64,000 bases of DNA from Diplonema japonicum (GCA_964019335.1 OZ025663.1:310001-374000), one strand, 5' to 3'. Counted from the first letter of the stretch, positions 2,893 through 48,057 are shown. The notes: generated by a model from the sequence alone, not told the origin. Made by a program: numbers and translations.

Positions 2893-3070
2893 AAAAAGAG
2901 AACCCTCAGACAGGGTGACTTTTGTTATCCCTGAAATGTTGTTTTCTCGAGAGAAAGAAAAAAAAATCCTGAAACCTCGCCGAGAGCAACTTGGTTCTCT
3001 CGCCAGTGTTCAGAGTCACTCACAAAGCAGATGGTGCACCATTAGCATGCAGATTTGTAGAGGGAAAAAA

Positions 3071-3114
<44 letters not shown>

Positions 3115-3347
3115 AGGAACAACACACAACAATATAAGGAGAAACACAGGCCCCCTTTATTGTGTGAAATTCTCTTCAGTGTGTTTCTCTGACGAGAACA
3201 AAAGGAGGGGAAAAAAAATTTTTTTTTTGTCTTGCCTGAGCATGTGTACATAGGGGAGGAGGTGGTTTTTCTCTACTTTCCCATTTTCCCATATTCCCCC
3301 CCGTTCGTCTGGGACTCTGTTCTAAGTGCCAACCCAGAAAGAAAAAG

Positions 3348-23500: not shown

Positions 23501-26453
23501 GGAGGGGCACGCCGATCCCTGGGTCGCGAAGAACTTCACGAAGGGGATCCCGAGGTACGGACAGCTGCAGGCGAGGGTCATCGAGGGGGCCATTGTCGAC
23601 GTCAGCAGGCTGCCCATCTCCGACAGGAGGCTCTTCGGGTTGTCCTTGTTCGAGGGAGACACGAGGCCGTACCACGTGCTTGACTGCTACTCCGACACGC
23701 CGCCCGAGGACGTGACCTCTTTCATCATGCTTTACAAGATGGTGCAGAAGGGGAGGTTTGTTGTCTTCAACCTCCAGGAGCTCGGTCCCGACACCCAGAA
23801 CGAGATCCGTCTCGCGATCGACGCCGCGAAGAAGTCGACGGACAAGGAGCTGCTCGCCCTGGTGACCGACGGCGACGGGACCGACGAGACGATCGAGTTC
23901 GTGGACGCGCAGGCGTGCGACGTGAGGTGGAAGAAGTGGGCGATGGCGAGAGCGGCGAAGCTCAAGAAGTTCAAGACGATCACCTACTACGCGCAGAAGC
24001 CCGGTACCGGAAAGTCGTACACGATCAACCGGAACGTGAAGGAAGGAAAGTGGGGAGAGGGGGTGGAGGCCACGAGGTTGGACCTGGACTCGACGAAGGA
24101 AAGCATGGACCACGTGTGCTCGAGATTGATGGCTCCCTTGAGGGCGAAGGAAGGGCTGCTCATCATCCACGTCGGCCACGACACCAACCCTCGTGTGGTG
24201 AACCAGGTGTTGGACAACCTGATCTTCTTCGGGAGGGTCCAATCCACATCCGGATTGTCGGTCTCCATCAAGTCGCAGGGATGGCACCTCGTTGTCGAGT
24301 TCCAAGAGCCCCCCGCACCTGAGGTGGGCCACGTCGTAAACGACCCGTGGAGGAACGCTGAAGGCAAGAGCGAGATCACCCTGCTGTCGTGCGCCGACCT
24401 TGCTGAAGAGGGCGCCCTTGCAGAATATGACCTGAGTGAGTACCCGGGTGTCTTGGATGCCTTGAAGTACTTCCGCACCGTGTTCAGGGGCACAGATGCG
24501 AACTTGCCCACCGACGACATGCTGCTGGTTCGCATGCTTGCCATGGGGATCTGCAATGCTCCCAAGAACAGCGGCTCTGATGCGGACACTGTGGCGCACA
24601 ACGCCTTCCTCGAAGCTGCAAACAGCAGCACACCTCGTCTGCTTTCGCGTTCGATAAGATACTTGGTTAGGCAGTACAAGATCTTCCAACCAGAGCCCAA
24701 CGCTAAAGACATAACTCTCGCCAAACCTACAGAACAGAACAACTACAAGTTTGCGGCACACATCTTGATGCACGAAATGCACCACTTTGTCAACCCATCG
24801 CTTCCGGACCACTTCCACGCGATCCTCCAGAAAGATGATGTGAAGGATTACATGCAGCTCGCAGGAAACCCCAGCCCCGATCTTCAGGAAAGCATCAGGC
24901 TGCACGAAGAGGATTTGCATCAAAGGTTTCTTCTCTTCGTGTCGCACAAAGAAGCAGCAGAAGAGCAGCACAAGGCGAGACAGAAAGAGAAGGCGACAGC
25001 ACCCATGTACTGGCTGGCTGAGATCCTTTCCGAGGAGCTTGGGGTTGACAAGAAGCTGGTGATGACTGATCTGCGTGAGAACAACTGCGTTCTGACCCGT
25101 GACTTCTTGCAGAAACTCATCCAGCTGAATAACCGCATAAACCTCAACGATCCCCCTATCCTACAGGGGCCATCTGGTACTGGTAAGAGCAATGCAGTGA
25201 GAATATTGACAAGCCTGAGGCTGCTTCCGCTGCTTCCGGGTGTTAAGCAGTTCAATACACACAGCGACACTAACGGTTGTATGGTTTTCTACAAGTGGAC
25301 CAGGGTGAACCTAAGCTTGAGGAAGCTCTTCCCCAATGATAACTCCCGGGTGGAGGTTGATGGGCAGGATATGATATGGACGGCCATGCAAAAAATAAAT
25401 ACCAAAGAAAAGGCAAGAACTTGTTTTGCAGAACTTGTGGACTGTGACAACGTGGACGCCCTGAACTACGTGAGGGAGTGTGTGAACGACTTCTTGGGCC
25501 ATTACTACGAGGTTTGGAAGGAGGTGAAGGCCACGTCGTTCAGAACTGCCGTCGAAGTGCTCAAGAACGATGCTGAGCCCGGTGACCCAAAGAGGGCAGA
25601 GACCTTGAGCAGGTCCGTGCTTGTTGTTGCGGATACTCTCTCCAAAAACTGGAGTGGTTTGGCATCTGAGGTCGCAATCTGCTTGAACTCCGCCATTCGC
25701 TCTTCGAAGATGAAGGAGAAGGCCGGTAGGCTGTGCTATGAAAAGTTCATAAAGATTCTTGACTCCAATCCCTTGCACGATGCCTTTAAAACCTGGGCAC
25801 GTGAGGCTGTTCTGATTGTGAAGGAAAATCGAGAAGCCTTATGCCAGATTGTGAAGGATAAATTGAGGGAGATGCTGAGGAACTCACCGCTCCTGAACCC
25901 GTCGGCTGAGCTGATGGAGGCACTAGCAGACACCGGCACCAGTGATGACCCGACGACGGGCGAGAAGCTTGGTGAGATCATCGTGGAGATGTTGAAGCTG
26001 AAGAGAGAGAATGCCTCAGTCGACATTCTTATGCGCTACGACCTGACACCTGAGCTGCTGTTCGATCAGATGCGCCCTGTGCTGGAACGTGCACTGGAGT
26101 GCCCCTCAGTAAAATTTATGGTGATGATTGACGAGATGAACGCCACGAAGATGTTGGGTCTTGTGAAGCGGATTGTGGTGGACCGCTACTGGGACAGGTG
26201 GGAGGACGCACACCCTGAGTCAAGGGGGTACCTCCCTCCCAACGTTAACTTCGTTGGTGCCGTGAATCCCTCGAAGAAAGACGCCATCCTGGAGGGTACA
26301 GCCACAGAAGAATCTGACAAGACAAACGAGGGTGCAGAGAGTCTCGGGTTCGACGTGACCCCCATGCCGCCCTCGCTGATGGAGTACATTGTGCCGTGGA
26401 AGCAGCTAGAAGGACAGAGCTGTTGTTGGCGGCCGGTGGATCCAAAAACGTAA
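20523..26453 (+). CDS. Truncated RNF213-like paralogue (1976 aa): PDZ/2xSPRY/Trp-rich repeat array + first two AAA units only
   Basis: Uninterrupted ORF. 20568-24590 is essentially identical to 33411-37433 and 25921-26405 to 38806-39290. Walker A motifs AQKPGTGKS and LQGPSGTGKS, Walker B MVMIDEMN. Ends after micro-deletions near 26408-26425. Has its own polypyrimidine tract and AG (20391-20480). Confidence 0.8.
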   Translation: MATTKEVRPASSMFSTTMLQSWLGQWSTSDSEEQSVFEEMCGTHPELSCLTPAELVRMAELMRGVCSEGDVNHAEASRMMKSWKGLRSRTMNRKSMSADSSENIEGTGNASMVPKPTECTLVVVPEVTGQVANTGTPLLLESCGVASGKYVEGLPMYKRCDDAVLSPVENGWAIHSSPTIDAERLLTSVAEHESYLQPWAMGDWRGTDFKGGLQSTPCLNARVQIDGGHLKAAKWSEESKSREDNVRVVAPGPLKPMDLTVNRASLYVKSVEKDSLWESLGLIRGTRIVQVTTERVIRGTADELQRALKEACTDHFKGFALTVQSPWIWLDAAVSPDIDVSENGRSITKNRGAKPSIAVSPSPAGGKVWRVRVSGDALGMRVGLCAREMDHKLTEADSAPNKDRAYWYMRHGSLRTGGKDVAPTRAFKSGDIITIRHSGKAKTIEFFLNGQKLSAMFTDVKELMLHPCVYLSKKTATISISPGAPVEEVLEWNPKKLGPHTKLSADRRTVEKAGDADSSVSTGAIGGKVMVGPGPHKFAIRVKGRGPLTDSCTVGVAPPGVFLNKAYEPQTSMFGMTVRPDGNVFGLQSSTILHTGQRLQGSAAIWEYVFTFTVDLGEGTIMVMRDDSRVVHSSLIPDFPKATGPLVPFVTLSKPDIQCTFEPCKEEVKQGEGKVSVIVKGTNVAKNAKKPGTRGVADGLYHKWIPTYKREDGAYSISYWNGRWCVSDTADRPVAWSSPCSPDQQLGTESLRWTKLVNYEQVPKYIRLVVPEQPGGILELQKEKNDGRVVYANQSHKLIWSEVLKKWMVTKLKPEKRTVAYYISPSKALYPHCCSSWSWGNGTTWLQDDRIRVAAVDQTPLREDSKHLVWTQKEYGTGWEDAAEVKLNLTPSAPNVDIGISIRLSTAEQGTVIMDTMTADELAGWHVVRKASGASVRAPDLRKALLEVSRNATSGLCMDTDWKTTEEATKIVRANAVSQLRRIGDLLRSFKGAEGHADPWVAKNFTKGIPRYGQLQARVIEGAIVDVSRLPISDRRLFGLSLFEGDTRPYHVLDCYSDTPPEDVTSFIMLYKMVQKGRFVVFNLQELGPDTQNEIRLAIDAAKKSTDKELLALVTDGDGTDETIEFVDAQACDVRWKKWAMARAAKLKKFKTITYYAQKPGTGKSYTINRNVKEGKWGEGVEATRLDLDSTKESMDHVCSRLMAPLRAKEGLLIIHVGHDTNPRVVNQVLDNLIFFGRVQSTSGLSVSIKSQGWHLVVEFQEPPAPEVGHVVNDPWRNAEGKSEITLLSCADLAEEGALAEYDLSEYPGVLDALKYFRTVFRGTDANLPTDDMLLVRMLAMGICNAPKNSGSDADTVAHNAFLEAANSSTPRLLSRSIRYLVRQYKIFQPEPNAKDITLAKPTEQNNYKFAAHILMHEMHHFVNPSLPDHFHAILQKDDVKDYMQLAGNPSPDLQESIRLHEEDLHQRFLLFVSHKEAAEEQHKARQKEKATAPMYWLAEILSEELGVDKKLVMTDLRENNCVLTRDFLQKLIQLNNRINLNDPPILQGPSGTGKSNAVRILTSLRLLPLLPGVKQFNTHSDTNGCMVFYKWTRVNLSLRKLFPNDNSRVEVDGQDMIWTAMQKINTKEKARTCFAELVDCDNVDALNYVRECVNDFLGHYYEVWKEVKATSFRTAVEVLKNDAEPGDPKRAETLSRSVLVVADTLSKNWSGLASEVAICLNSAIRSSKMKEKAGRLCYEKFIKILDSNPLHDAFKTWAREAVLIVKENREALCQIVKDKLREMLRNSPLLNPSAELMEALADTGTSDDPTTGEKLGEIIVEMLKLKRENASVDILMRYDLTPELLFDQMRPVLERALECPSVKFMVMIDEMNATKMLGLVKRIVVDRYWDRWEDAHPESRGYLPPNVNFVGAVNPSKKDAILEGTATEESDKTNEGAESLGFDVTPMPPSLMEYIVPWKQLEGQSCCWRPVDPKT

Positions 26454-29135: not shown

Positions 29136-32100
29136 ATGGCCGGTTTTTACTCGGGGTTTGGTGGTGGTAAAGATATGTTTGCCAGCTTTGCTAGAGGCAA
29201 TCCAGACCTGATTCCAAATCACTTGGAGAAATGGGTCGAAGATATAACAAAGCTCGTGACACGCGTGTGTGACAGGAGAGACTGGGAATTCGTGGCTACC
29301 AACTTTCGCGATCTGATGGAAAGAGACGGTATAGTGGGAGCAGTCCCATGTCCACAATTCTGCCCCGCAGTTCTCGCTGCGGCAAGACATTCTAAAAAAC
29401 TCTGTCAGGAGTACAACGACTCAACTAACCCTGCCGTGCTCTTGGCATTCGTGACCATGCACAGAATTCTTGCAAAGCTCGCTGCAAAGGCATCCACACA
29501 CACAAAGAACGATGACGACGTGCATGTGAAGGAAATCGCACGCACACGTCTCGAGCTCCAGGACTCCATCAACGTCATGTGCATCAAACATGTCGATCGC
29601 TACCGCATGAAACTCGACCTTGATTCCCTGCAGTCCCTCACCCAACGTATTATCCCAGGCACGCACGCCTCGCAGCATACTAGCCAAGTCACGCAACATG
29701 TTATCCTATCCATCGAAGACTGGCTTCTCCGTCTGCCATACGGCAAAAAAGGTGCCGCAGCGTACCGCATGCTCCTTGACTACAAATCTTTCCTGAGCAA
29801 CCGTCAATCTTCGTGGAAAGTTGTTCTCGCGGGCCTTCTTGACCAACCCAGGGACGCACGTAGGTGCGCAGAGCTTTTGCTCTGGCAGGCTCACCCCAAG
29901 TCACACAGACAGAACGATGAATTGGCGCCTATAAAACTGGACGACCAAGACGCTGATTACTTTCTCCACCATGCTGCGGATGGCGTGCCGCCTGAGGAGG
30001 TCTGGAACCTTCTTCTTGACCACGACCGAATTGGTAAAGCGAAGCAAGAGGCCGACAGACACCAGGGAGACGGGGACCGTAGGCAGAGAGGCAGGCACAA
30101 CAGGGACAATGATCTGGAAGGGAGGTGGTTGTCTCAGCATGGGACCTTTAACTTCCATCACGCTCAGGCCGCAGGCAGCCCCTTTACCATGGAGTTCAGG
30201 TCGGGAGAGACCGTGCTCGTAGGCGAAGTGTTCAAGACAGATGAGGCACCCGGCTCGATCCCCGCTTGCCCCATGTCACGTGTTTTCCCTAGCCACGCCG
30301 TTCGCAGTGACGATATCACCTTCTGGATATCAACACGTGGCGACACGATGCACATGCTACGTGAGCAGACACAGATTGAGGTATACTACGTTGTTGACTC
30401 CAGGCGTCTCTTGCAAGAGTTGGCAGCAGGTGCCGTCAGCGATGAGACCAGAAAGAACCTCCACAAAGTCACGGCGGTGAAAGATGACATCAGCAGTGAA
30501 ACTGTTGTTGCGTTCTGTGCCAGGGTTCTGCAGAATGTTCTGCAAGCACCGCCCACCCCTGGCCTTGAGGACAAGTTTGAGGTTGCTTTCAAGGACCTTC
30601 AGGGCTTTGCTGACTACCTTGTAGTGCACATGGAAAACTCATTCGGTGCCCGCAAGTTGTACCCCGAGACGCTCATTTTAGTTTTGAAGGCGATGTTGAA
30701 GGCCAACTCTGGGATGAAAGAGAAGATCTATGGGCAATCGGGTTTTTTGCTGAAGCAAGCTACGCGTGAGCCTTGCATCAATTTAGTGGCCATCTACGGG
30801 AGGGTGTTGGAGGAGAACCTACCATTGGTGAGCAAGGCGGGTGAGGTTGTCAACTCTTTGAAACGTGTTGCACAGGGGGAGATTGGGAAGAGCGGCGACC
30901 CCTTGGCTGTGCTGCAGTCCCTGAATGCTGTGTCAAGACATGATTTCGACGGTACGTGGACGTGGCTTAATGGGTACAAGGAGAAGAACTACTCTAACGC
31001 TTTCACCATCACGGGACACCACGTGACTTTGAACGACCCTGCCTTCTATGGTGGCGTGGTGAAGTCTGTGCGCTATGTCGGCTCGAGCCTCTTTATCACC
31101 ATCGTTATCAACGAGAAAGTGAACTCTCGCATGCTGCTAGAACGAGGTGATGACTTCGACAGGCATGTAAACATCAGGATCGAGATGACGCAGAAGGCAG
31201 CAAGCACTCGTTCATCCGATGAGGTGCATGGCAAATGGACATCGACCAGCTCTTCAGCTGAGACTTACCAGAGGCCTGAGTGCGTGTTTTCCCGAACAGA
31301 AAGGGGGACTGTGTCGTCCGAATGGGACCAGCGTGCCATCGCCCTTACACAGAGGCCCCTTGAAGACGCAATTGCTGGTTGGGATGCCTCTGGTCTTGAC
31401 GACCGCACCTCGGCTGCCAAGCTGCTAGAGAACGTGATCTGCGATAGAGCTCTTACAACGCCTCAAACAAGGTACGAGAAATACGTGCTCAATCTGTGGG
31501 AGAGATGCTGCAGCCAGGTGGTCAAGTCCAACAAGTTCAACACCGTTAGCAAGCTTGACGATTGGATATTACACGACGTGAGCCTGTTCACCGCTAACAC
31601 CGGGATGCGACAGGAGGCTTCGAGGTTGATGCTGGACTCGTACTTCAAGAAAAGGGAGATTACATGGCAGCTGTACCCCGTCCCTCTTTCGAAGGTTGAC
31701 AAGCTTGTTGTCAAATATCTCGGAGCTACAAACTTTAAGAAGAGGATTGTGCACGCGCGCGATGATTTGCAGCGCCACTTGGACGCCCACAAAATCTCGA
31801 ACAAGGTCTACTCCAACGTCACTTCAAAGTGGCACGGTATCCACAGTGAGAACGGCATCAAGTTCCCTAGCCCAAGACTGGACTTCGTGTCGCCCGTGCA
31901 GGGTCTCGAGGAGGTCAAGGACGTGCTGAGGGAATTGATCGAGAACTGGTGCTTGAAGGCAGCGCACACCAAGCTTGAAGTCATCGAGACTATGATCAGG
32001 GACAAGGACCTGGTTGCGCTTACTGATCTTGAGACCACACTGAAAGAGACTAGGGCCATCTTGGGGCCTGTCCTAGCTGTTCAGGATGCAACAATTAGTC

Positions 32101-35100
32101 CGTTGTTGAGAGCGCACTTCTTGAAGTGCTTGGGTGGGAAAGAGCTGCAGCTGGATGCGTTCGCACTTGTTTTCGAGAATGCATGCACTGCAATCCGCAA
32201 GATCAAACTTGACACGAAGATCATTGACGCTGTAGCTGATCTTTTCCCCATGGACGGGAAGTTCTCAGGGGCCAGGCTTGAGCAGGAGCGTGCTCTGCTT
32301 GAGAGGATCGGGATGCCGAGCGACGTTGTGTCGCACCTCTTGAACGGTGCACTCCCCTTGAGGTTCATCATCCACGACATGCAGGCCTTCCGTGACCTCG
32401 CTGATACCAAGATTCCCGACCTCATGCTCCACCCTGAGTTCTTTACTAACAGCGAGCGTGATGTGCTCTTAGATGAAGAAGTGAACAACCTCCCCATCTA
32501 TGCTGCGAAGCGGAAGTGCGACACCATCAAAGCAACAAGCGGTGGCTGTCACCACCGTGTGCTGGAGATCATCAGAACAGTCCTTAACTGCAGCAAACTG
32601 GTGGAATTTACAAGAGAAAACCCGCAGGCGCAAGATGCAGGTCTTTCAAACGTTTTGTCCAACTCGCGCGACTTGCAACACGCAAGCTTCCAGACATTCT
32701 TGAACTGTGCCCCTTACATCAACCCTTTTGTGGCTGCATCTGCGATGCACGTTGCCAAATACAAAGAAAAGGCCCAGCAGCTCATGGACGAGAAGCGCGA
32801 GAGGGGAGAAGAGCCAGTGGTGACACCCGAAGAAGTTCGCTCTGCCTCAATCAGGCTTCCCATCAACAACAATGAATCATGGAGCAAGACTCAACCGGAA
32901 GGTTTTTGGGAACTGATGAATGCTTCGTTTGGAGACGAGGACCTGATTGATGTGAGGAACGTACAGAGGAACCTTGAGAGAATGACGACTGCTGATCAGA
33001 TCGAGGGTCTGGAGAAGATGATCAAAGAACAGAACGGTGCTACCGATCGGATGATTGCACAGTGCCACATCGCCGCAGGGCTCCCCGGACATCCACCTGG
33101 AACAGTGGTGAATGAGGGGGCACCCGTGCCCGAATCAGAGCCCGCATCAATAATCATTTATCTCCCTCCCACAGGGCAGCCTAGCTTGGCGTGCGACATT
33201 GGTGATGTGACGAAGAACGGTTCCGAGTACCAGGACCTTGTCTACAGGGCGACCTTGCAGAAGGGGCTCGACAACGCGCTTGATGTGTTCGTAGGCCAGG
33301 CTCGTGAGGTGCTACGTGCCTTCAACGCTGCCTGCGGGTTGTTCAGCGAAGGGCACTTAGAGTTCAGGTCTCGAAAATTGCAGTTCAAACACAACGATGC
33401 CGCACGTGTAACGACAATGCTCCAGTCTTTGCTGGGGCAGTGGTCGACCTCGGACTCCGAGGAACAGTCGGTTTTTGAAGAAATGTGCGGGACCCACCCT
33501 GAGCTGTCGTGCCTCACGCCCGCGGAGCTTGTCCGTATGGCGGAGCTGATGAGAGGTGTGTGCTCCGAGGGGGATGTGAACCACGCGGAGGCCTCACGGA
33601 TGATGAAGAGTTGGAAGGGTCTTAGGTCGCGCACCATGAACCGAAAGAGCATGTCTGCGGATTCGTCTGAGAATATAGAGGGGACGGGCAACGCCTCGAT
33701 GGTGCCTAAACCCACCGAGTGCACCCTGGTGGTGGTGCCTGAGGTGACCGGCCAGGTGGCGAATACCGGGACCCCTTTGCTGCTCGAGTCTTGTGGGGTG
33801 GCGAGCGGGAAGTACGTTGAAGGCCTTCCCATGTACAAGAGGTGCGACGACGCTGTGCTTTCGCCGGTGGAGAACGGTTGGGCGATCCACTCCTCCCCCA
33901 CCATCGATGCTGAGAGGCTCCTGACGAGTGTGGCTGAGCACGAGTCGTACCTGCAGCCGTGGGCCATGGGAGATTGGAGGGGGACCGACTTCAAGGGCGG
34001 GCTGCAGTCGACCCCGTGTTTGAACGCACGCGTGCAAATCGACGGCGGGCACCTGAAGGCCGCCAAGTGGTCCGAAGAGTCGAAGAGCCGAGAAGACAAC
34101 GTTCGGGTGGTGGCACCGGGTCCCCTGAAGCCCATGGACCTCACCGTGAACAGGGCTTCCTTGTATGTGAAGTCTGTTGAGAAGGACTCCCTGTGGGAGT
34201 CTCTGGGCCTGATCAGGGGTACTCGTATCGTCCAGGTGACAACCGAGAGAGTTATCAGAGGCACTGCTGACGAGCTTCAGAGGGCCTTGAAGGAAGCCTG
34301 CACCGACCACTTCAAGGGCTTTGCGCTCACCGTTCAGAGCCCCTGGATCTGGTTGGACGCTGCGGTCTCGCCTGACATCGATGTGTCCGAGAACGGGAGG
34401 AGCATCACCAAGAACAGGGGGGCGAAGCCGTCTATCGCTGTTTCGCCGTCTCCGGCTGGTGGGAAGGTCTGGAGGGTCCGTGTGAGTGGTGATGCGCTTG
34501 GGATGAGGGTCGGGTTGTGTGCTCGTGAAATGGACCACAAGCTGACCGAAGCGGACTCCGCCCCCAACAAGGACAGGGCCTACTGGTACATGCGACACGG
34601 CAGCCTCCGGACAGGTGGGAAGGACGTGGCGCCTACACGCGCCTTCAAGAGCGGTGACATCATCACTATCCGGCACAGTGGGAAGGCGAAGACTATCGAG
34701 TTCTTCCTGAACGGGCAGAAGCTGAGCGCCATGTTCACTGACGTGAAGGAACTGATGCTTCATCCTTGTGTGTACCTTTCTAAGAAAACCGCTACAATCA
34801 GCATCAGCCCTGGCGCTCCTGTCGAAGAGGTGCTTGAATGGAACCCCAAGAAGCTCGGACCGCACACAAAGCTGTCTGCGGACCGCAGGACTGTGGAGAA
34901 GGCGGGCGATGCGGACAGCTCCGTGTCGACGGGCGCCATCGGTGGGAAGGTTATGGTGGGGCCGGGTCCCCATAAGTTTGCGATCAGGGTGAAGGGCAGG
35001 GGACCGTTGACCGATTCGTGCACCGTTGGTGTTGCTCCTCCCGGTGTGTTCTTGAACAAGGCCTACGAGCCGCAAACCAGCATGTTCGGTATGACAGTGA

Positions 35101-38100
35101 GGCCAGACGGCAACGTGTTTGGTCTGCAGTCGAGCACCATCCTGCACACGGGGCAGAGGTTGCAGGGGAGCGCGGCCATCTGGGAGTACGTGTTCACCTT
35201 CACCGTTGACCTTGGGGAGGGCACCATCATGGTGATGAGGGACGACAGCCGTGTCGTGCACTCGTCCCTCATCCCCGATTTCCCGAAGGCGACGGGTCCC
35301 CTCGTGCCCTTCGTCACTCTCAGCAAGCCCGACATCCAGTGCACGTTCGAACCATGCAAAGAGGAGGTGAAGCAAGGAGAGGGCAAAGTCTCCGTCATCG
35401 TTAAAGGGACCAACGTGGCGAAGAATGCTAAAAAGCCGGGGACTCGCGGTGTCGCGGACGGCTTGTACCACAAATGGATCCCCACGTACAAGAGAGAGGA
35501 CGGCGCCTACAGCATCTCATACTGGAACGGCAGGTGGTGCGTGAGCGACACCGCTGACAGGCCCGTCGCGTGGAGCTCCCCTTGCTCGCCGGATCAGCAG
35601 CTCGGAACGGAGTCCTTGAGGTGGACGAAGCTGGTGAACTACGAGCAGGTACCGAAGTACATCCGTCTGGTTGTCCCCGAGCAGCCTGGTGGGATCCTCG
35701 AGCTGCAGAAGGAGAAGAACGACGGGAGGGTCGTGTACGCCAACCAAAGCCACAAGCTGATTTGGTCGGAGGTTCTGAAGAAGTGGATGGTGACGAAGCT
35801 GAAGCCCGAGAAGCGCACCGTTGCGTACTACATCTCTCCCTCGAAGGCGCTGTACCCGCATTGCTGTTCGTCCTGGTCGTGGGGCAACGGGACCACGTGG
35901 CTGCAGGACGACAGGATCCGCGTTGCAGCTGTTGATCAGACGCCCCTGAGGGAGGATTCGAAGCACCTCGTGTGGACGCAAAAGGAGTACGGTACCGGTT
36001 GGGAAGACGCGGCGGAGGTGAAGTTGAACCTGACGCCTTCGGCACCGAACGTCGACATCGGGATCAGCATCAGGTTGAGCACCGCGGAACAGGGGACCGT
36101 GATCATGGACACGATGACGGCGGACGAACTGGCGGGGTGGCACGTCGTGCGCAAGGCATCGGGCGCCTCCGTGAGGGCACCCGACCTTCGGAAAGCGCTG
36201 TTGGAGGTGTCGAGGAACGCGACCAGCGGGCTCTGCATGGACACTGATTGGAAGACGACGGAGGAGGCCACAAAGATTGTGCGGGCGAACGCGGTGAGCC
36301 AGCTCCGCAGGATCGGTGACCTGTTGAGGAGTTTCAAGGGCGCGGAGGGGCACGCCGATCCCTGGGTCGCGAAGAACTTCACGAAGGGGATCCCGAGGTA
36401 CGGACAGCTGCAGGCGAGGGTCATCGAGGGGGCCATTGTCGACGTCAGCAGGCTGCCCATCTCCGACAGGAGGCTCTTCGGGTTGTCCTTGTTCGAGGGA
36501 GACACGAGGCCGTACCACGTGCTTGACTGCTACTCCGACACGCCGCCCGAGGACGTGACCTCTTTCATCATGCTTTACAAGATGGTGCAGAAGGGGAGGT
36601 TTGTTGTCTTCAACCTCCAGGAGCTCGGTCCCGACACCCAGAACGAGATCCGTCTCGCGATCGACGCCGCGAAGAAGTCGACGGACAAGGAGCTGCTCGC
36701 CCTGGTGACCGACGGCGACGGGACCGACGAGACGATCGAGTTCGTGGACGCGCAGGCGTGCGACGTGAGGTGGAAGAAGTGGGCGATGGCGAGAGCGGCG
36801 AAGCTCAAGAAGTTCAAGACGATCACCTACTACGCGCAGAAGCCCGGTACCGGAAAGTCGTACACGATCAACCGGAACGTGAAGGAAGGAAAGTGGGGAG
36901 AGGGGGTGGAGGCCACGAGGTTGGACCTGGACTCGACGAAGGAAAGCATGGACCACGTGTGCTCGAGATTGATGGCTCCCTTGAGGGCGAAGGAAGGGCT
37001 GCTCATCATCCACGTCGGCCACGACACCAACCCTCGTGTGGTGAACCAGGTGTTGGACAACCTGATCTTCTTCGGGAGGGTCCAATCCACATCCGGATTG
37101 TCGGTCTCCATCAAGTCGCAGGGATGGCACCTCGTTGTCGAGTTCCAAGAGCCCCCCGCACCTGAGGTGGGCCACGTCGTAAACGACCCGTGGAGGAACG
37201 CTGAAGGCAAGAGCGAGATCACCCTGCTGTCGTGCGCCGACCTTGCTGAAGAGGGCGCCCTTGCAGAATATGACCTGAGTGAGTACCCGGGTGTCTTGGA
37301 TGCCTTGAAGTACTTCCGCACCGTGTTCAGGGGCACAGATGCGAACTTGCCCACCGACGACATGCTGCTGGTTCGCATGCTTGCTATGGGGATCTGCAAT
37401 GCTCCCAAGAACAGCGGCTCTGATGCGGACACTGCTACGTACAAAGCCTTCCTCGAAGCTGCAAACAGCAGCACACCTCGTCTGCTTTCGCGTTCGATAA
37501 GATACTTGGTTAGGCAGTACAAGATCTTCCAACCAGAGCCCAACGCTAAAGGCGTAACTCTCATCAGCCCTACAAACCAGAACAAGTACAAGTTTGTGGC
37601 ACGCATCTTGATGCACGAAATGCACCACTTTGTCAACCCATCGCTTCCGGACCACTTCCACGCGATCCTCCAGAAAGATAATGTGAAGGATTACATGCAA
37701 CTCTCGGGCATCCCTAGCCCCGATCTTCAGGAAAGCATCAGGCTGCACGAAGAGGAGACGACGCGTACACTTGTTGTCATGCGAGGGAACGACAAAGACA
37801 ACATTAAGCAAGACGAAGAAGAGAAGTCCAAGGCGAGGCAGAAAGAGAAGGCGACAGCACCCATGTACTTGCTCACTGAGACCCTTTCCGAGGAGCTTGC
37901 GGTTGACAAGAAGCTAGCGACAACAGCTCTACGTGAGAGCAACTACGTGCTGATCCCTGACTTCTTGCAGAAACTTGTCCAGCTGAGTGGCCACATAGAC
38001 CTCAACGATCCCCCTATCCTACAGGGGCCATCTGGTACTGGTAAGAGTTATGCAGTGAAGATGTTGTCAGACCTTATGCAGCTTCCGTGCGCTTCGGAGT

Positions 38101-41100
38101 TCGATGCAAAAAACAGGAACAGGGTCGCCTTCACAGACCTTAGGAACACTTTCTACAAATGGGCCAAGAAGGACTCAAGCTTGAAGAAGCTCTTCCCCAA
38201 TGACGACTCTGACGTGCAGGTTGGTGGGCAGGGTGTGCTGTGGACGGCACAGACAATGAAAGCCACAAACAAGGCGAGCACGTGTCTTGCAAAACTTGTG
38301 GACCGTGACAACGTGGACGCCCTGGACTACGTGAGGGAGTGCGTAAACGACTTCTTGGGCCCTCTCATCAACGATGAGTATGCCAACCCTGACATTGCAA
38401 AGAAGAAGAGGGAACTCGCGTCGTTCAGAACTGCCATCCAAGTGCTCAAGAACGGTGCTGAGCCCGGTGACCCAAAGAGGGCAGAGACTTTGAGCAAGTC
38501 TGTGCTTGTTGTTGCGGATACTCTCTCGAAGGTCAGTGGTGGTTTCCTGACATCTGAGATCGTCACCTGCATGATGTCCGCCATTCGCTCTTCGAAGATG
38601 AAGGAGAAGGCCGGTAGGCTGTATGAAGAGTTCATAAAGGTTCTCGACGCTGATCCCTTGCACGATGCCTTTAAAACCTGGGCACGTGAGGCTGTTCTGG
38701 CTGTGAAGGGAAACAGCGAAACCCTGTGCCAGATTGTGAAGGAGAGATTCAGGGACGAGCTGAGGAACTCACCGCTCCTGAACCCGTCGGCTGAGCTGGT
38801 TCAGGCACTAGCAGACACCGGCACCAGTGATGACCCGACGACGGGCGAGAAGCTTGGTGAGATCATCGTGGAGATGTTGAAGCTGAAGAGAGAGAATGCC
38901 TCAGTCGACATTCTTATGCGCTACGACCTGACACCTGAGCTGCTGTTCGATCAGATGCGCCCTGTGCTGGAACGTGCACTGGAGTGCCCCTCAGTAAAAT
39001 TTATGGTGATGATTGACGAGATGAACGCCACGAAGATGTTGGGTCTTGTGAAGCGGATTGTGGTGGACCGCTACTGGGACAGGTGGGAGGACGCACACCC
39101 TGAGTCAAGGGGGTACCTCCCTCCCAACGTTAACTTCGTTGGTGCCGTGAATCCCTCGAAGAAAGACGCCATCCTGGAGGGTACAGCCACAGAAGAATCT
39201 GACAAGACAAACGAGGGTGCAGAGAGTCTCGGGTTCGACGTGACCCCCATGCCGCCCTCGCTGATGGAGTACATTGTGCCGTGGAAGCAGCTTGCAGAAG
39301 GACAGAGAGAGCTGTTCATTTCTCGTCTCATCGGGGCCAACAAGAATCTCTTCTCTGCAGACATCAGGAGAAGCCAGATCAAGGCACTGGACAGACTGCT
39401 GCTGAACGCGCATAGATTTGCACAGAAGAAGTGCCAAAACAAAAGATCAACAGTTTCGCAGCGTGATCTTCACAGAGCAATGAAGCTGTTCGACTTTTTC
39501 TACAAATATGAGAGGGAGTTCGTGTTCAGTAATGGAAGCCAATCTAGTGAAGTGTGGGAAAGGTCACTGTCCTCGATGCTTCTCGGCATTGCCGTTTCGT
39601 ACTACTTTAGATTTGCACCCGATGAGAGAGAGGAGCTGTCGACGATACTTACGGCGCTTCTTGTAGAGGAAGCCGGGAAGAACCCGAAGGAGGTCCGTGC
39701 ACTGCCTGATGGGGTAACCTTCGCAGACGTGGTGAAGAAGGCAGTGTCATTCTTCTGCCATAACAAGCACTTAAAGCTCCCCGAGGCTGTCTATGCGCAC
39801 CAGGGTCTGATGGAGAACCTGTTCGTGCAGATGGTCTGCTTCGACATCCGTCTTGCAGTGATCCTTGAAGGTGCGCCGGGTACATCGAAGACGCTTTCCA
39901 ACAATATCATCAGAGACAACATGACAGGGACAGGCTTGTTCTGGAAGGACTTCTGCCACATCTCGGACATCTGTAGGTACCAAGGGTCTGCACAGAGTAG
40001 CGCAGGCGAGATCAAGAGGAAGTGCCAGGAGGCATACACGAAGCAGAAAGAGAACGATGACGCAGGATCGAAAAACAAGCGTACTTTGCTGTTCGTGGAC
40101 GAAGCCGGTTTGGTGAAGGGTGAAACCGACGAGAGAAAGTGGGCCCTGAAGGTGCTGCACTACTACTTGGAGGGTGCGAACCTCTCGTCAGTGCTGATGA
40201 CAAACGCAACTCTTGACCCCGCCATCGGAAACAGATGCATTGTGGTGTACATGGCCAAGCCCGAGTCCAGCGAGCTCACAAACATGTGTGCAGGTATTCT
40301 GCACAAACATGGCCGGAAGGGTCTGTCCTATCTCGCCTCGAAAATCGTCCCTGTGTGCTGTGATGCCTTCCACAAGCTCGTCCCCCAGACGTCAGAGAAA
40401 GAGGAGCTTGTCGGCTACGACCCATCTGAGAAGTTCAGGTGGTGGTACGGTCTGAGAGATCTCTTCCACATGATGCGTTACATCAGGAGGTACCAGCCAA
40501 ACGACAAGAACCGTGACGAAAACTCCAAGATCGACGTGACGCCCGAGCTGGTGATGCGTGCCTTGGAGAGGAACTTCAACGGCCCTAGTGAGTTCTTCGA
40601 AGCCACAGTGAAAGTCTTTGGTGAGAAAATGGGAGCGATCGACCCAAACTTTTCTGCTGACAAACTGAGAGACGCAGCGAAGGGGAAGATCGACATCGTC
40701 CTGGACTCCATTCGGGACAACAACCGAGCGACAGAACAATCTGCTGGCAAGAACTTGAACGACATGTGGGTGAGGTTCAAGCTGCTGGTGGACACCACTG
40801 AGGATGGCTCGCTGCTGCAGCTCCTGAGGCAGAGTGATATCCCTCACTTCTGCGACCTAAGCGTACTGTCGCTGAGCGCGCTGTCTAAGGGTGACGAGCT
40901 TATGCCTGTCACTGTTGTGTCGCAGATTGCTGCTGCGATGGAAACCGGCAAGACAGTGTGGCTAACGAACACGAGAGAGATCGATGCCTGTCTGTTCGAC
41001 GTCTTCAACCAGAACTACGTTGTCGCGAGCAGCGGTGCGAATGAGGTGCTGCACTTCGTGGCCATCGCGATCGGTGCTGCTTTGGAGTACAAGCAGGTGC

Positions 41101-44100
41101 ACAAGGACTTCCAGTGTATTGTGCACGTTACGAAGAGAGAGCTGAAGGGGATGGGCCGAGTCCTTCCCTCTCCTTTCTTGAACCGTCTTGAGAAGTTCAC
41201 GATTTCCGTCGCTGATGTCGTGTCATACGTCGGGAGCCGCATGCTGAAGGAGGACGGGCTCAAGGCCGCACGTCTCAGGCAGAAGTTGGAGTCGTTCGAA
41301 AAGACGCTTTCCGTGCGCAACAGGTGTGTGTTCAGTGACAGCGAGAAAGAAACCTTCGACTCCATCCTGCTTGAGGCCATCCAGCAGAACAAGCTGAAGG
41401 ACCGCATCCGCATCAACTCTCGTATCACAGCTGACGACGCCTTGTCGAGCTTCGTCTTTGGGTCTAGCGAAGAGAATGCTCTGTGGAGGTCGCTGAGTTG
41501 CAGGCTGCTCCAAGTGTTACGCCCTGAGGGCATGATCCTTGCACAGAGGGTGCTGAAGGGTGCGCCTTCATACATGAGGGCTTACTTCAGGGATTTGTCG
41601 CCATGGAGTCTCGAGAACTACCTGATTGATCTGAGGAACAGACTGCAGCAGGCAAACGCGAAGAAGAACAAGCTCGGATGGACCAGGTCCGTGATCTACT
41701 CGCCTGCGAACGTAGATTTCCCGTCTCTCATTGAGGAGATCGACAGCGTGTCCCAAATCAGTGTTGACGGGCTGCTTGACTCAGAGAGAGGGCACGAAGA
41801 CCTTAAAGAAGAACTGTACAAGTTCTGCTTGGCACCAGACAAAACTATCTTCGTTGTTGTGATGAGCCCCGACTCTCTTGGGAAGCCCGAGTCCATGGAA
41901 GTTCGCCACATGCTCGACACCCCCCCCGAGTTGAAGGAAGGTCAGTCTATGCAGAACAAGGCTGTCTGCGTGCTGCACGCCTTCCATGCCACCACGTTGA
42001 CTGGCTCTACCAACTGCACGCCGCTCTTCGGGTGCGGGTGGGACCAGGTGTACATCGATGCTGCGGGTGAGCACGTGAGCCTTGACATCCTGCGCTACGT
42101 CGACCCGTCTATTTCGGGGAGGAGGGCACCTAAGCCCCTTCCAGAATGGAAGGACATGCTAGTGTTGCTCGACCAGGCAATGAACGGCCTGATGCAAGCA
42201 CAGAGCGAGGCTTCCACCAGGTGGGCACCCGTGGCAGCGAACGACCCTGCTGCGGTGCTTTACGACATCAAGAAGCCTTTCAGCGAGCAGGTGACTAAGG
42301 CGAGGAACCTCCTTGAAATTTGCCCTAAGGTTCGCAAGACTCTACTCAACCTGTACAGGGCCAGGCTCCCCACCGATCTAGAGCTTGTTGAGATGGCGAA
42401 GGATGTGGTGGCGTCCGAAAGGTCCCTCAGTCTTGCGCAGAGGCTTATCGATGAGGAGAACACCGCTCCGAGAGCGCTACTCACTTTCGCTCTGCGATTC
42501 TTGCTTGATGATCGTAATGCATCGGCGCTGCTTTCTTTCTCGAAGTCTGGCACAAAGGAAGACCTCGCTAAGAGTGACGACATAATTGCCCGCGCTCTCG
42601 AGGTTGCCGCCTCTGCAACGACCTTTGACCACTTGAGGCACATGAAGGTGAACACGCTCCCGCCTCTGTACGTGGGTGCGTCGATGCCCGCTCTGCCCGG
42701 TTCGTCTTCTTTGATGGAGACGCTCCCCATCCCTGCTGGCGCTTTTGATGTGGTTGCCGAAGCCATTGAGCTGCAGAAGAAGTACGAGGAGGGTCCGGTC
42801 GGCACCCTTGTTAAGATGGTGAACAAAGACGCCAGACTGGTCACTGCTTTCTTCCATGACAACATCAGGTCGCGTGTGAGGTACAATGACGAGAAGCTCG
42901 TGCGTCAGGTTGTGGAATGGACGTTGGAGCTCTCCCGCGGGATGTACAAGGTCAAGTTTGGCAACGAAGCAGAGAACGTGTGGAGGGTGCGTGCTCTGTG
43001 CTGCGTCGAGTCTGCAGCTATTGACGATTACATACTGGCGATGGTCCCACTTGCGGCGACAGGGACTCTTGACGGCGTGAACCCCGCTGCTGTGTCCATG
43101 AGCGACGTTGGCAACTCGCACGTGGCTCATGAGCTGTGCCCCAAACTTCTAATTGAGGCCCTTCCTAGAATGGCTGGGAGGCTTGGCCAGTTCCGTATGG
43201 CGTGCTCAAGCATGTTGCACAGGGTGACAAGCGAGTGGGTAGTAAACAGCAAGACCTTGCCGTGTTTGGCAGTGCTAGGTGGCCTGCTCTCAGACGAGGG
43301 CAAGCCCAAGGTCAAAGAGGCGATCACCTTCTCGAAGGCATGCATGGCGAAGAAGTCACTCGACTTCCCTACCTTAGAAGCAGCAATGACACGGGCATCT
43401 GTCCCGAAGGTATCCTTAGCCCTTGCTAAACTATACAAGAGCGGTGACGAAATCCCATTATTCCTGTGGAAACAACCCCTGAGCAGGGCAATGCATGCAC
43501 GAGTGATGTCTTTCATTATTACAGAGCCTGAAGCGGCGATGAAGACTAACCCTGCAGTAGCCGATGTGCTGCTGAAAGCTGCACTAGCGCAGATGAAGCT
43601 GAGGAAGGCAAGCAACGTGACGGAGGTCACTTTCTCACTCCCCACAGGCAAGACGGCCGAACCGAATCTTGTCAAGGAGCTGAACGCGTCTGTTTATCTT
43701 GCTTTGTACGATCTTCTGTACGACCGAACTGTTGGGATGAACACGGAGGCGCTTGACGCAAGCCTTGCAACCAAAATCGCCACGAAATACCTGGAACTTC
43801 TCGAAACTGAGAAGGCACTGAAGAAGTCGTACAGCTGCTCGCTCTTCATTGCTGTACACAAGAAAGCACTGGAAGTGGCGTTCCTGCAGGCCTTAGCATT
43901 CGTGTTCCGTCGTCCGCCCAGCGAGCAGAAAAAGACGTGGGAACCCGTATTGATGACTCAGGAAGCCGTCAAGAATGTGACGAAGGTGGCAAAGTTGCTG
44001 ATGGAGCCTACTGGCTTTGTGTGCCCTAAGAGAAGTAGTGACCTGGACAGGAAGTTGACGAAGAAACCGCCCAGTGCCGTGTGCGAGACCAACATGCTGA

Positions 44101-47100
44101 TGCTGCTTCATGCACTGGAGAACGGTGTCGGTACTGTGAGGGGCATGGGTACAAAGGCGATGCTGGAATACCTGCAGGACCAGGTGCCAGTATCTGACAA
44201 AGACAGCCATATTGGAGCGCTGGTGAAGGTCTGTGGTGCTGGTATGCAGCACAAGTGTCAGAACGCTGAGCCCATGGTTACCAGGCCCGGTGACCTTCCC
44301 TTCGTGTACAAGGTCGACGAGCCTCTTTACGAGCCGTTCATCACGCTGAGGCGTCAGCTCAACCTCAGCTCCGACGCAGGTATTGCTGACGGGAAGGAGG
44401 TGGATGAGATCAACACGATTCTTGAAAGCATTCTCAAAAAGCACAGCAAGACAGAGGTAAAACAAACACACAACAATACACATTACAACACAGGCCCGTC
44501 TTCTTTTGTTCTACACCTCTTTCAAGTGCTTCTTCGGTGAGAAGATCACCCACAAAGGTGCCCTCAAAATCGTGAAGAATGACAAGCTCAAGTCTCTGCT
44601 CGACCTTAACGAGAAACAGCTCTTGATCCTCCACATCGCGCTTGACCCGAAGCAGATCCCTGTGCCGTGTCCCGAGAGGGTATGTTTAACTTTGTATTCC
44701 AATAGTAGAACTACTACAGGTCAACGTTATGGATTCACTCTCTGAGGGGTTCAAGCAGGAATGGACTGAGATGGTGATCCCTGCCCTTGCTGTTGCTTGC
44801 TCCGATCCTACATCGCTGCTGTACTCGCTGTACATTGACATCGACGAGCAGAAGAACCTGTTCTTGCCAGGTGACAAGACAGGGAGTGCCATTACGCACG
44901 GTGGTGGCTACAAGCTTGACTGTGTGACCCAGCTTGACGAGAACGGGAACATCCATTCGTACGCTAGGGGGCAGCCGGTGATGAGCACGGGTTCTTGCTA
45001 CCTGTTGTGGGGTATCTTGTTCGGTGGTCTTGCATTGCAGCTGCTTTGGTTCCCTGGATGTCACTCGACGATCTGGAACTGGGTGGTGTCGTCGTCTATC
45101 CACAGCAGGACCTTCTCGTATCAGCATGGGACATCGAACTACCGCCACTTGGCCCAGCAGCTGACAGAGAGGTCCGTTGCGTACCATCTACACATGGGTG
45201 CGCACACGGGGCTGTCTGTTGACGAATCGCAGAGGATGTACGCGTTCCTGACCTACGAGTTCACGAAGTGCTCAACGCTGCAGAGGAAGAGGAACAACAC
45301 ACGTGAGGCAGCCATCCAGGTAGAGTCGAAGGTGGAAGATGTGTGGAAGTTGTACACTGGCAAGAAGAGGTCATTGCTGACCCGTCCTTCAGCTGATATG
45401 TGCTTCACCTTGAAAGCCCTCCATGACTGGGGTATCGACACCAAACCGCATGAGCTTCCCCGTTCAGGGAAGATCTTCAGCGACCTCGAGTGCCTGGGTG
45501 CGCAAGATGTGCCGAAGCTGCTGAACATGGCACTTCATGAACGTGAGAAGCTGAGCTTGTTGGCACCTCTGCTGACCGATCTGTACAGCTTCGCTTCGAG
45601 GGTGCACAGAATGCTCACCAACAGGCTGCCCACGAAGTACCAAGACCAAGGCGAGGAACTGCCCACTGCCTACCAGTCTGTGCTAGACCTGTTTAAGGAG
45701 TACACGCCTGTGTCGCAGTACGAAGTTGCCATTGAGCAGTTGGCCCGCATCAAGAACAAGTGGAACACCTTCAGGGTATGCAGTACCAGTTTTTATTATC
45801 ATATAACAGTCGAACGTGGGGCCCATAGACTTCGAATGCGAAGAAGGTGGCATCAACATCGTGATGGAGGAGCGGGAGGTACAGGTTGGTGCTGCTGGGT
45901 TGCCAGACACCCTTGACTTCTGGATCACGATGCCAGATGGGATTGACGCGCAGCACCGAAACCTTGTGAAGGCAGCTCTGCTGTCCCTTACGGAGAAGGT
46001 GTGTTATATTTCTTTTGTGTTTGTAGAACCCATCACAGTACAACCAATGCCAAGCCATCACTTCGCACTATACCAAAACGGAATGTGAAGACGAGATGGA
46101 GGCTGTCGACCCCATGCTACTCAACCCTTCAAAGCCCGATCTCATGCTCAGGGAACACAACGGCCTTGGTGAGGTTTGTAGGTCGCACGTAACCGATACT
46201 GAGGTATGCACACATCGCTATTTGCACGAAATTCACAGACCAACTGGACCGGCATCGAGACGGAGCTGTCGTTCGCCTCTGGGCTGCTGCTCCCGAAGCT
46301 ACTCTCCCCCGTCTTACCGGTATGCATGTTGCTTGTATCAGCTAATTTATTTTCAGGTCTTCCGCTTCTTAGACCCTGAGGACAACGTGCAGTCCCACGA
46401 AGTGCAGCAGCAGGCTGCTGACCTGGTATGCTCAACACACCCCATGAACACACAACAGTTGATGGTGCAGCCTGACCGTCACCTGAAGCCCCTGACGCAG
46501 AAGCAGGAGGAGAATCTGCGGACGAACGTGAAGCACTTCAACGAAGAGCAGAACATCTCCGTGCTGGTCGGCTTGATCAGCACTTTCAAGGCGAGGGACA
46601 CAACGCCGACCAGCAAGCTGTACCCAGAGGTCACAAAGCGATGGGGCCAGAAGGTGACGATGCCTCTGCGCCACAGCATGCTGTCGGATATTGTGGTCGA
46701 GCAAACGCGTGGCGTGCTAAATGTCTTCATGGACAAGCTGGAGCAGAACGATTGGTTGACAGCGCACATCGGCACCGATTTGCACATCCCCATCTCGAGC
46801 GAACTTCTTGCGCAGATCGACGAAAGGCTCGTTGTTCATTTGCGCAGCAACCCCCCCGACACAGTGCTCGAAGAGCTCGAGGAGATCCTCGACTCGGCCG
46901 GCAACTGCTGCTCGTCAGGTGAGTACCTCCGCGACACGAAGGCGTCCCTCTCGGAGTTGCTGTCTGCTGTCTTGCTCTTCGAAGACAACCACAACCCGTG
47001 CGACATCTTCGAAGGTGTGCTCATCGAGAACATCGTCCCCTTCATCAAGCTGGTGAGGAAGAAGCTGCGCAAGCTCCGCAGCCAAGCCTCCTCGAAGACA

Positions 47101-48057
47101 TGGAAGGAAGAAGGCGCCGAGCTCAGGGAAGTCCCGCACACCGTCGTGCTCAAGAAGGCACCGCTTGCCATCATGTACGACGACGACCTCACCATCACAT
47201 CGGTGGGTGATGGTGCTGGTGCGAGCGCAGGGTTGCAGGAGGGTATGAGAATCGTGGCGATTGGAGAGCACAGAGTGAGGGACAGGCAGGAGGCGGACGA
47301 CGCCTTGACGAAAATGCTTGATGTGTTTGAGATTTCTGTAGCGCTGGCGACACAGGAGCAGCACGGCGACGATCTTGACGTTGCGATGCACCATGCGGAC
47401 AAGCATGACGACGTGGGGTTGGACCGCGATAACTCATGGGCCTCATTCATCGAGCAGGCGAAGGACGAGGAAAAGCAGATGCACGACCTACCGAGGTGCC
47501 CATCGTCCTCTGGGATGCTAGGCCGCTCAGACTCCTTCTCGGGTACTGCATCTCACTCAAGACCATCACTGGGCGCGGGAGCAGTACCAGCAATGGAAAG
47601 ATCCGGATTGCCAAGATCCCAGTCCAATATTGAGGCCAAGGAGCTGGAACACAGAATGAAGCACGGCCTTGGCGAGAGGCAAGGATCCTCTACGGGTTTG
47701 GGAGAAAGACAGGATTCTTCTGCCTACGATGATGCCATGAGGAGACAGAAGCATGAAGTCGAGAGGCGTGAGGACCAGGAAGAACAAGAACTGTCAGAAC
47801 TCGAGCAGCAGAAGCGAGAAAACAAGCTTTTGAAAGACGAATTGACGAAAAAGAATAAGCAATGCGAGTCAGTGACCTCGCAGCTTACAAAAAGGGAGAA
47901 GAGCCTGAAGGATGTGGAGACTAAGCTCCACGAACAGGAATCTATCAATCAAACCCTTGCCACCACTGCACGTGCCCGGCAGGATGAGATCGAATCACAA
48001 AGAATAGCGGCACAGCGTGCTGCGAAAGAAAGCGAATCTTTGCCTGATTTTAAATAG
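29136..48057 (+). CDS. RNF213: Giant RNF213/mysterin-like AAA+ ATPase (about 6221 aa; introns 44457-44493, 44680-44719, 45776-45809, 45999-46038, 46204-46238, 46320-46356, 46426-46458)
   Basis: Ordered RNF213-type motifs: LQGPSGTGKS, MIDEMN, VSQRDLHR, ENLFVQMVC...LEGAPGTSKTLS, LLFVDEAGL, LKVLHYYLE, NATLDPAIGNR, YGLRDLF, LERNFNG, METGKTVWLTN...LFDVFNQNY, VHKDFQCIV, PSPFLNRLEK. Seven phase-0 GT-AG introns join track ORFs 29136, 44506, 44729, 45816 and 46096 into 18666 coding nt. C-terminal PDZ (about 47140-47345) and coiled coil. Confidence 0.88.

Follow-up and report, generated by a model that had tools for sequence, protein, structure and literature searches.

We analyzed a 64,000-nucleotide stretch of the Diplonema japonicum genome (GCA_964019335.1 OZ025663.1:310001-374000; the whole stretch is referred to here as the window) and found that it encodes, on its + strand, an RNF213-like AAA+ giant protein carrying a discrete, lineage-restricted block of domains. 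This block, the cassette, consists of a small tryptophan-containing beta domain (W0), a PDZ-like domain, a SPRY domain, a PRY/SPRY-like domain and two further tryptophan-rich beta domains (W1 and W2), in that order, and it is located just ahead of the AAA+ ring. The cassette insertion is genuine and transcribed. We found no description in the literature of an RNF213-like AAA+ giant with an integrated cassette of this putative binding type.

Borders of the Cassette and Its Place in the Protein

An initial annotation, made from the sequence alone, had proposed a PDZ, tandem SPRY and Trp-rich cassette of about 900 residues at positions 33600-36290, directly before the ring. The cassette proved to be real, as all of the motifs quoted for it lie in frame in one open reading frame (ORF) and its folds are present in an AlphaFold2 model. 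Its proximity to the ring was also borne out, with about 90 residues between the cassette end and the first ring unit in the alignment to dynein described below. The block stood, whereas its size and borders had to be corrected, to 853 residues at 33579-36137. The boundaries were placed between the motifs CSEGDV and GWHVV because the two flanks are contiguous, or nearly so, in homologues from Namystynia karyoxenos (Hemistasiidae). Four genes of that species (P0040, P0041, P0042 and P0044/45) are homologous to the window protein on both sides of the cassette, and the block itself is missing. In P0040, residues (aa) 795-1473 of the window protein align to 925-1577 and aa 2333-2980 to 1591-2198, leaving the flanks 14 residues apart. 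In P0041 the two flank alignments abut, and the equivalent of CSEGDV directly joins the equivalent of GWHVV. The features of the gene and its cassette are as follows (window positions; for the VIA-align matches the three values are given as reported).

29136-44540, + strand: main ORF of the RNF213-like giant; 5,134 codons, uninterrupted
33471-33578, + strand: N-terminal flank, chassis helices ending in CSEGDV, aa 1446-1481; kept in the cassette-free Namystynia homologues
33579-36137, + strand: cassette, aa 1482-2334, 853 residues; delimited against cassette-free homologues
33579-33764, + strand: cassette-start linker, aa 1482-1543; low confidence, mean pairwise identity 27% among orthologues
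33765-34052, + strand: W0, small Trp-containing beta domain, aa 1544-1639; model, hhalign and profile search
34089-34343, + strand: PDZ-like domain, model residues 213-297, aa 1652-1736; Dishevelled-3 PDZ 8s6a (10.7 / 2.0 / 82 of 86)
34347-34820, + strand: SPRY1, model residues 299-456, aa 1738-1895; HERC1 SPRY 4qt6 (19.7 / 2.0 / 149)
34821-35360, + strand: SPRY2, PRY/SPRY (B30.2)-like, model residues 457-636, aa 1896-2075; TRIM25 PRYSPRY 9iun (17.0 / 2.8 / 155)
35382-35678, + strand: W1, Trp-rich beta domain, aa 2083-2181; model, hhalign and profile search
35679-35987, + strand: W2, divergent Trp-rich beta domain, aa 2182-2284; model, hhalign and Trp content
35988-36137, + strand: cassette tail, short beta/loop segment, aa 2285-2334; AlphaFold2 model and conservation
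36138-36332, + strand: C-terminal flank, chassis helices from GWHVV, aa 2335-2399; conserved in Namystynia, aligns to the dynein linker end
36402-39377, + strand: first three units of the AAA+ ring, starting at about aa 2423; phmmer, AlphaFold2 model, VIA-align and Foldseek

The in-frame motifs are ELSCLTPAELVRMAELM (aa 1456-1472), the PDZ-like string (aa 1666-1701), DIDVSENGRSITK (aa 1747), LHPCVYL (aa 1875), KLSADRRTVEK (aa 1912), LVPFVTL (aa 2056) and SQLRRIGDLL (aa 2388-2397). The last of these is situated about 50 residues inside the conserved chassis, past the cassette end.

VIA-align superposes the three helices behind the cassette (aa 2329-2399) on the final part of the dynein linker. 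RNF213 has a dynein-like linker above its ring, and in the mouse protein this linker comprises residues 1291-1774, ahead of AAA1, with the term “stalk” applying to the N-arm (Ahel et al. 2020, PMC7311170). Because the post-cassette helices align to the dynein linker, and because the RNF213 linker precedes AAA1 and its stalk is the N-arm, the insertion site is best described, on the strength of the model, as a dynein-like linker end that would lie outside the N-arm stalk. The flanks had at first been likened to adjacent stalk motifs of RNF213, and this likeness was not supported, with no alignment obtained by sequence or profile. Residues 1-1481 gave no match to RNF213 (phmmer with aa 701-1480; hmmsearch with a five-sequence N-terminal profile against all PDB sequences), and a phmmer search of the PDB with aa 2330-2960 likewise gave no RNF213 match.

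Domains of the Cassette

The cassette was modelled with AlphaFold2 over aa 1440-2420 from a 24-row alignment (predicted local distance difference test, pLDDT, 82.7; predicted template modelling score, pTM, 0.74). Comparison of this model with 48,161 PDB representatives in VIA-align gave three clear fold assignments, SPRY1, SPRY2 and PDZ, so that the PDZ and SPRY folds first proposed from the sequence were all recovered (4qt6, 9iun and 8s6a). Both the bent beta-sandwich of the SPRY fold and the PDZ arrangement of beta strands and two helices are present in the model. SPRY1 exceeds the cut-off of the Pfam SPRY family (PF00622) with 45.1 bits versus 26.3 and is structurally closest to the housekeeping SPRYs of HERC1, RanBP9/10 and Ash2L. 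SPRY2 has no Pfam match; in hhalign profile-profile comparison it is homologous to SPRY1 (97%, E 4.6e-11), and its closest structures are TRIM PRYSPRY folds. Weak PDZ matches were observed at the position equivalent to the PDZ-like domain in the homologues P0014 and P0016.

The initial annotation counted three copies of a small beta domain. Three units of about 95-100 residues each are indeed present, with W0 ahead of the PDZ-like domain and W1 and W2 behind SPRY2. Homology between W0 and W1 is clear (hhalign 96%, E 2e-9), and the resemblance of W2 to W1 is only weak (hhalign 16%, E 0.0016). Tryptophan makes up 3.1% of W0, 5.1% of W1 and 5.8% of W2, versus 1.5% of the whole protein, and across three paralogues W0 and W1 have invariant G, Y, Y, D, W, S and W positions. 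We do not claim a new fold for the W domains because they were modelled only within the whole cassette.

In this genome, matches to the W0/W1 profile are almost confined to the RNF213-like cassette family, with few weak others. A W-like unit (L039, contig C101:125755-125985) with an E value of 5.7e-5 to the profile was found in an unrelated 1,299-residue frame, and contigs C17 (two), C107 and C22 gave weaker matches. Possibly the W domain moves as a module within this genome.

The AAA+ Ring and Its Kinship with RNF213

The core of the protein is dynein-like, with six AAA units in one chain, and is recognisably RNF213-like. When aa 2401-5134 were compared with all PDB sequences by phmmer, RNF213 was the sole match (E 1.6e-25, about 820 residues, AAA3-AAA5). 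The Walker A motif GPSGTGKS (aa 2964) aligns to that of RNF213 AAA3 and GAPGTSKT (aa 3579) to that of AAA4, and a further Walker A, KPGTGKS (aa 2569), is located in the unit that pairs with dynein AAA2. These Walker A positions are consistent with the pattern of RNF213, whose nucleotide-binding motifs are confined to AAA2, AAA3 and AAA4 (Ahel et al. 2020, PMC7311170).

A second AlphaFold2 model, of the linker end and AAA1-3 (aa 2315-3414; 18-row alignment; pLDDT 85.1, pTM 0.82), points the same way. The best eight matches of this ring model in a Foldseek search of the PDB, whose listing gives no residue ranges, were all RNF213 cryo-electron microscopy entries (E 1e-13 to 2e-9), with dyneins ranking below them from E 1e-6. 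VIA-align leaves out chains of more than 3,000 residues, and hence RNF213. It paired model residues 109-1100 with residues 1772-2592 of yeast dynein, which we take to be AAA1 to AAA3, and the ring therefore starts near aa 2423. In several entries, model residues from about 24 on were also paired with dynein 1561-1563, in the linker. An all-helical insertion of about 180 residues was observed within the AAA3 unit (window about 38238-38780, aa about 3035-3215, model helices 720-897), and it explains the 615-residue gap between the Walker A motifs of AAA3 and AAA4.

The protein had been described as an RNF213 chassis, a description that we keep for the AAA core and limit to it because Pfam detects no RING or RZ finger. 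In the Pfam sequence scan, aa 3751-5134 contained no RING family at E <= 0.1 and the two ORF pieces that follow the main ORF contained none at E <= 1, and the scan did not detect the RZ finger (PF20173) in the window protein; the same scan does find PF20173 in an RNF213-like paralogue on contig C25. The protein is RNF213-like in its motor, and its status as an RNF213-type ligase is putative only.

Gene Structure and Transcript Support

The main ORF ends at 44540, and transcript-derived proteins continue beyond it into the next two ORFs. The giant ORF is thus broken twice, at about 44540-44729 and about 45916-46096, and the two breaks are short introns or frame changes. The mature product is about 6,200 residues long and is encoded in the window by the main ORF plus these two downstream pieces, which were searched separately, unjoined to it. 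The transcript-derived D. japonicum protein P0001 (EukProt EP01064; 6,206 residues) has a cassette 100% identical to that of the window protein, matches that protein exactly through residue 2,766, and reads on beyond the main ORF via 44696-45877 and 46036-48054. N-terminal flank, cassette and ring are therefore all held in this single transcript-derived protein. Past residue 2,766, a stretch of P0001 follows the variant of the neighbouring paralogue, and because of this P0001 may be a chimeric Trinity isoform. The D. papillatum orthologues carry only the annotation “hypothetical protein”.

Two observations concern the surroundings of the cassette gene. A weak second PDZ-like signal was seen at the very C-terminal end of the giant (window 46096-48054, residues 367-404 of the piece; Pfam PDZ_6, E 0.02), and the hidden Markov model (HMM) of the cassette PDZ matches the C-terminus of the D. 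papillatum orthologue P0012 (aa 5825-5880) at 1e-4. Across window positions 1-64000, nearly every long ORF is on the + strand, with very few interruptions. D. japonicum is a diplonemid (Euglenozoa), and this layout fits the polycistronic, intron-poor gene arrays of euglenozoans.

The window holds the cassette twice.

20736-23294, + strand: second cassette copy, nucleotide-identical, in the truncated paralogue ORF 20373-26453; sequence identity

The stretch 20588-24541 is identical to 33431-37384 at all 3,954 nucleotides. This shared segment runs from the final part of the N-terminal flank through the entire cassette and AAA1 into AAA2, and beyond it on either side the sequences diverge. The presence of two identical 4-kb cassette stretches in one window, and the breaking of short-read assemblies at the ends of this stretch, could be taken to mean that the architecture arose by mis-assembly or by read-through fusion of separate genes. 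Contigs from four public sequencing runs (three studies) span 32000-37900 with zero joints. Three of the four assemblies place the repeated stretch, prolonged to 37551, in a contig of its own at 1.6- to 2.5-fold depth, which is what a real repeat present in two copies should give. The N-terminal flank is joined to the cassette by one contig (run X2), and zero joints skip the cassette. The public runs recorded as RNA contain no cassette stretch; flank, cassette and ring are joined in the transcript-derived proteins. Together with the 5,134 codons without interruption and the recurrence of the architecture across at least seven species and, in this genome, in two paralogues on other contigs, these observations make an artefact extremely improbable. 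The repeated stretch itself speaks for recent duplication or gene conversion over an assembly error.

Distribution, and Gain or Loss

The cassette architecture was found in at least seven species and, within this genome, in two further paralogues on other contigs. The order W0-PDZ-SPRY-SPRY-W1-W2 is kept throughout the members examined, which come from D. japonicum (contigs C16, C18 and C60), D. ambulator, D. papillatum, Rhynchopus humris, Lacrimia lanifica and further ENA assemblies. Sulcionema specki retains the cassette in a full-length alignment, and Flectonema neradi has a Pfam SPRY. In one paralogue type (C60:418239-435974, + strand; 5,912-residue open frame) a third SPRY (aa 1534-1685) precedes W0, and counterparts of this three-SPRY type are present in D. 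ambulator (P0018), D. papillatum (P0021) and an ENA assembly (P0039). The extra SPRY indicates that the cassette has grown by whole domains.

This genome has three full paralogues of the family, a truncated copy that retains the cassette, and RNF213-like giants of at least five architectures. Two of these giants are without cassette domains. The C25 paralogue (C25:89827-105453, - strand; 5,209 residues) has an RZ finger (PF20173, E 3.8e-17), and the C7 paralogue (C7:470007-482357, - strand; 4,117 residues) has a sacsin-like region and a BMT5-like methyltransferase domain at its end. HMMs of the six cassette domains matched nowhere in the Namystynia proteins, in the C25 and C7 paralogues or in P0046, a metagenomic RZ-finger protein. 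The view of the cassette as lineage-specific is upheld by its absence from the four Namystynia homologues, C25 and P0046. Queried with the cassette and short flanks, 1.84 billion cluster representatives yielded only 29 matches, and nearly all of the significant ones were giants of the family or fragments of them. No stand-alone donor gene was found among these representatives, where the matches outside the family were weak and to SPRY only.

The initial annotation had called the cassette grafted. It is a discrete block; gain by grafting, however, is not separable from loss in hemistasiids. In a phylogeny of AAA3-5 with C25 and P0046 as the root, the Namystynia clade is sister to the three-SPRY (C60) type with a Shimodaira-Hasegawa-like approximate likelihood ratio test (SH-aLRT) value of 100, and all four Namystynia genes are nested among cassette-bearing genes, so that two changes are required. 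This topology is what would be anticipated if the cassette were ancestral to Diplonemidae plus Hemistasiidae, predated the divergence of the paralogues and was lost by a clean deletion on the Namystynia branch. The root is unsafe, however, because a very long branch (about 5 changes per site) leads to the outgroup, and a single clade of cassette-bearers is not rejected by the approximately unbiased (AU) test (log-likelihood difference 0.95, p 0.416). Hemistasiidae are sister to Diplonemidae in the species tree, which a single-gain tree matches without extra paralogue losses, and every outgroup is cassette-free. We therefore regard loss in Namystynia as a possible history, tentatively the lesser of the two. 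The tree does not decide between gain in Diplonemidae and loss in hemistasiids; a single gain on the Diplonemidae stem needs fewer extra events.

Possible Role of the Cassette

PDZ and SPRY are peptide- and protein-binding folds. From these folds and their position, we infer that the cassette is a putative multivalent binding platform that recruits a target or partner, and we give this reading a probability of roughly 55%. The platform would hold a target or partner beside the ring, at the point where the linker crosses it, and would in this way link binding to the ATP-driven machine and to the module at its C-terminus.

Several of our results weigh against this reading. The sequence match of the PDZ-like domain is below the Pfam threshold (PDZ_6 E 0.022, 15 bits versus a cut-off of 27), and the loop between its first two strands is PGPLKPM, with no GLGF-like motif. 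As the GLGF-type carboxylate-binding loop is missing, peptide binding by this domain is putative. The W domains have no Pfam match, homologues and fragments included, and in the ESM Atlas they matched unnamed clusters only, mostly haptophyte and with scores near chance. Since Pfam finds no RING or RZ finger, any ubiquitin-ligase output is unproven, and P0001, which joins cassette and ring in one transcript-derived protein, may be a chimera as noted above. The hypervariability expected of an arms-race sensor was not seen among orthologues, in which conservation of the cassette is chassis-like. Cassette domains of orthologues are 29-55% identical to those of the window protein, which overlaps with the lower part of the 35-60% seen for the neighbouring AAA units, and only the first 62 cassette residues are poorly conserved. 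Lastly, the pTM of 0.74 hints at a compact assembly, and a structural or regulatory body without external ligand would fit such an assembly equally well.

Such an internal regulatory body is the main alternative to recruitment. The cassette would in that case dock on the ring or linker and tune the ATPase or linker movement, with no external target. It is located in the linker, which in RNF213 may regulate ATPase function as in dynein, as suggested by Ahel et al. (2020, PMC7311170). The pTM over six folded domains, which suggests a fixed assembly, and the uniform conservation are also in keeping with a regulatory body. However, PDZ and SPRY are overwhelmingly intermolecular binding modules, Namystynia keeps the chassis without the cassette, so the ring does not need it, and the truncated paralogue has the cassette with only part of the ring. 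On balance, a purely internal function appears distinctly unlikely.

RNF213 acts in cell-autonomous immunity, and the PRY/SPRY domains of TRIMs bind pathogens. By analogy with these TRIMs and with the integrated domains of nucleotide-binding leucine-rich repeat proteins (NLRs), the latter a comparison made in the initial annotation, the cassette might be an integrated recognition module that detects a bacterium, a virus or effectors and triggers the RNF213-like machine. The TRIM PRYSPRY folds nearest to SPRY2 are consistent with this, as are the multi-copy nature of the family (three full paralogues and the truncated, cassette-keeping copy), the extra SPRY acquired by one paralogue type and the further RNF213-like giants in the same genome. 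Against it stand the near-equal conservation of cassette and chassis among orthologues, the housekeeping relatives of SPRY1 (HERC1, RanBP9/10 and Ash2L) and the failure of Pfam to find a RING or RZ finger. We consider an immune sensor, which would be target recruitment with a microbial target, unlikely. A more specific form of this idea, in which a diplonemid RNF213-type machine has turned sensor-effector, with the linker cassette binding a microbial or viral ligand and the ring reading this out mechanically, is less likely still. If true, it would be a protist counterpart of NLR integrated domains and of TRIM B30.2 recognition, and would provide the first recognition domains built into the RNF213 motor itself.

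Returning to recruitment by a binding platform, the way in which RNF213 locates its targets is still under study. In the cassette family, the linker beside the ring accommodates a recognition module that the machine presumably uses, and this offers a testable hypothesis for the coupling of binding to the ATPase. A paper about developing genetic tools for marine protists reportedly features D. papillatum; if this species is transformable, cassette partners and phenotypes could be tested in it. The finding also adds to the evidence for a wide radiation of RNF213-like giants in protists.

Comparison with Known Systems

Like the window protein, RNF213 (mouse 6TAX, human 8S24) is a giant single chain with a dynein-like core of six AAA units. 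Its Walker A motifs in AAA2, AAA3 and AAA4 and its helical linker into AAA1 have apparent counterparts at matching positions in the window protein. For the modelled part of the window protein, the linker end with AAA1-3, RNF213 also gives the highest-ranking structural match (E 1e-13), ahead of dyneins. The two differ in that the published domain list for RNF213 is without PDZ, SPRY or W domains ahead of the ring (PMC7311170). The mouse structure paper also points out that over 4,000 RNF213 residues had no annotated domain. The statement in the initial annotation that human RNF213 has no SPRY agrees with the domain list, and RNF213 chains, although present in the PDB library, are absent from the best 50 Foldseek matches listed for the cassette model. 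The window protein differs further in the RING/RZ finger, undetected by Pfam, in its N-terminal 1,480 residues, which have no detectable sequence similarity to RNF213, and in the long helical insertion of its AAA3. Our literature search brought up no paper that connects RNF213 to an architecture containing SPRY or to diplonemids.

The closer relatives share the core or the chassis. The C25 paralogue, from the same organism, has an AAA core of the same kind (27% identity over AAA3-5) and differs in its RZ finger, its lack of cassette domains and its very long branch from the cassette family. The Namystynia proteins P0040-P0045 are 20-37% identical in the N-terminal chassis and 29-34% in the ring, and they differ in having no W, PDZ or SPRY domain anywhere; one isoform has a SAM domain.

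Other likenesses are to the cassette. Several SPRY domains within a giant protein are also a feature of ryanodine receptors, and these were the top Foldseek matches of the cassette (about 500 aligned columns, with high root-mean-square deviation). They are ion channels with an unrelated chassis, and the likeness is at the level of domain folds only. In HERC1, TRIM25/TRIM5, RanBP9/10-CTLH and SPSB, the SPRY is terminal or in a small adaptor. Unlike those E3 ligases, the window protein, whose own ligase activity is putative, embeds two SPRYs together with a PDZ-like domain and W domains in the linker of an AAA+ motor. The integrated domains of plant NLRs and the NLR-B30.2 fusions of fish belong to another ATPase class and have their additions at a terminus, in contrast to the internal insertion described here, and a decoy or sensor role for the cassette would be drawn from them by analogy only. 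What these proteins and the window protein share is the concept of a STAND/AAA+ ATPase switch to which a recognition domain has been added.

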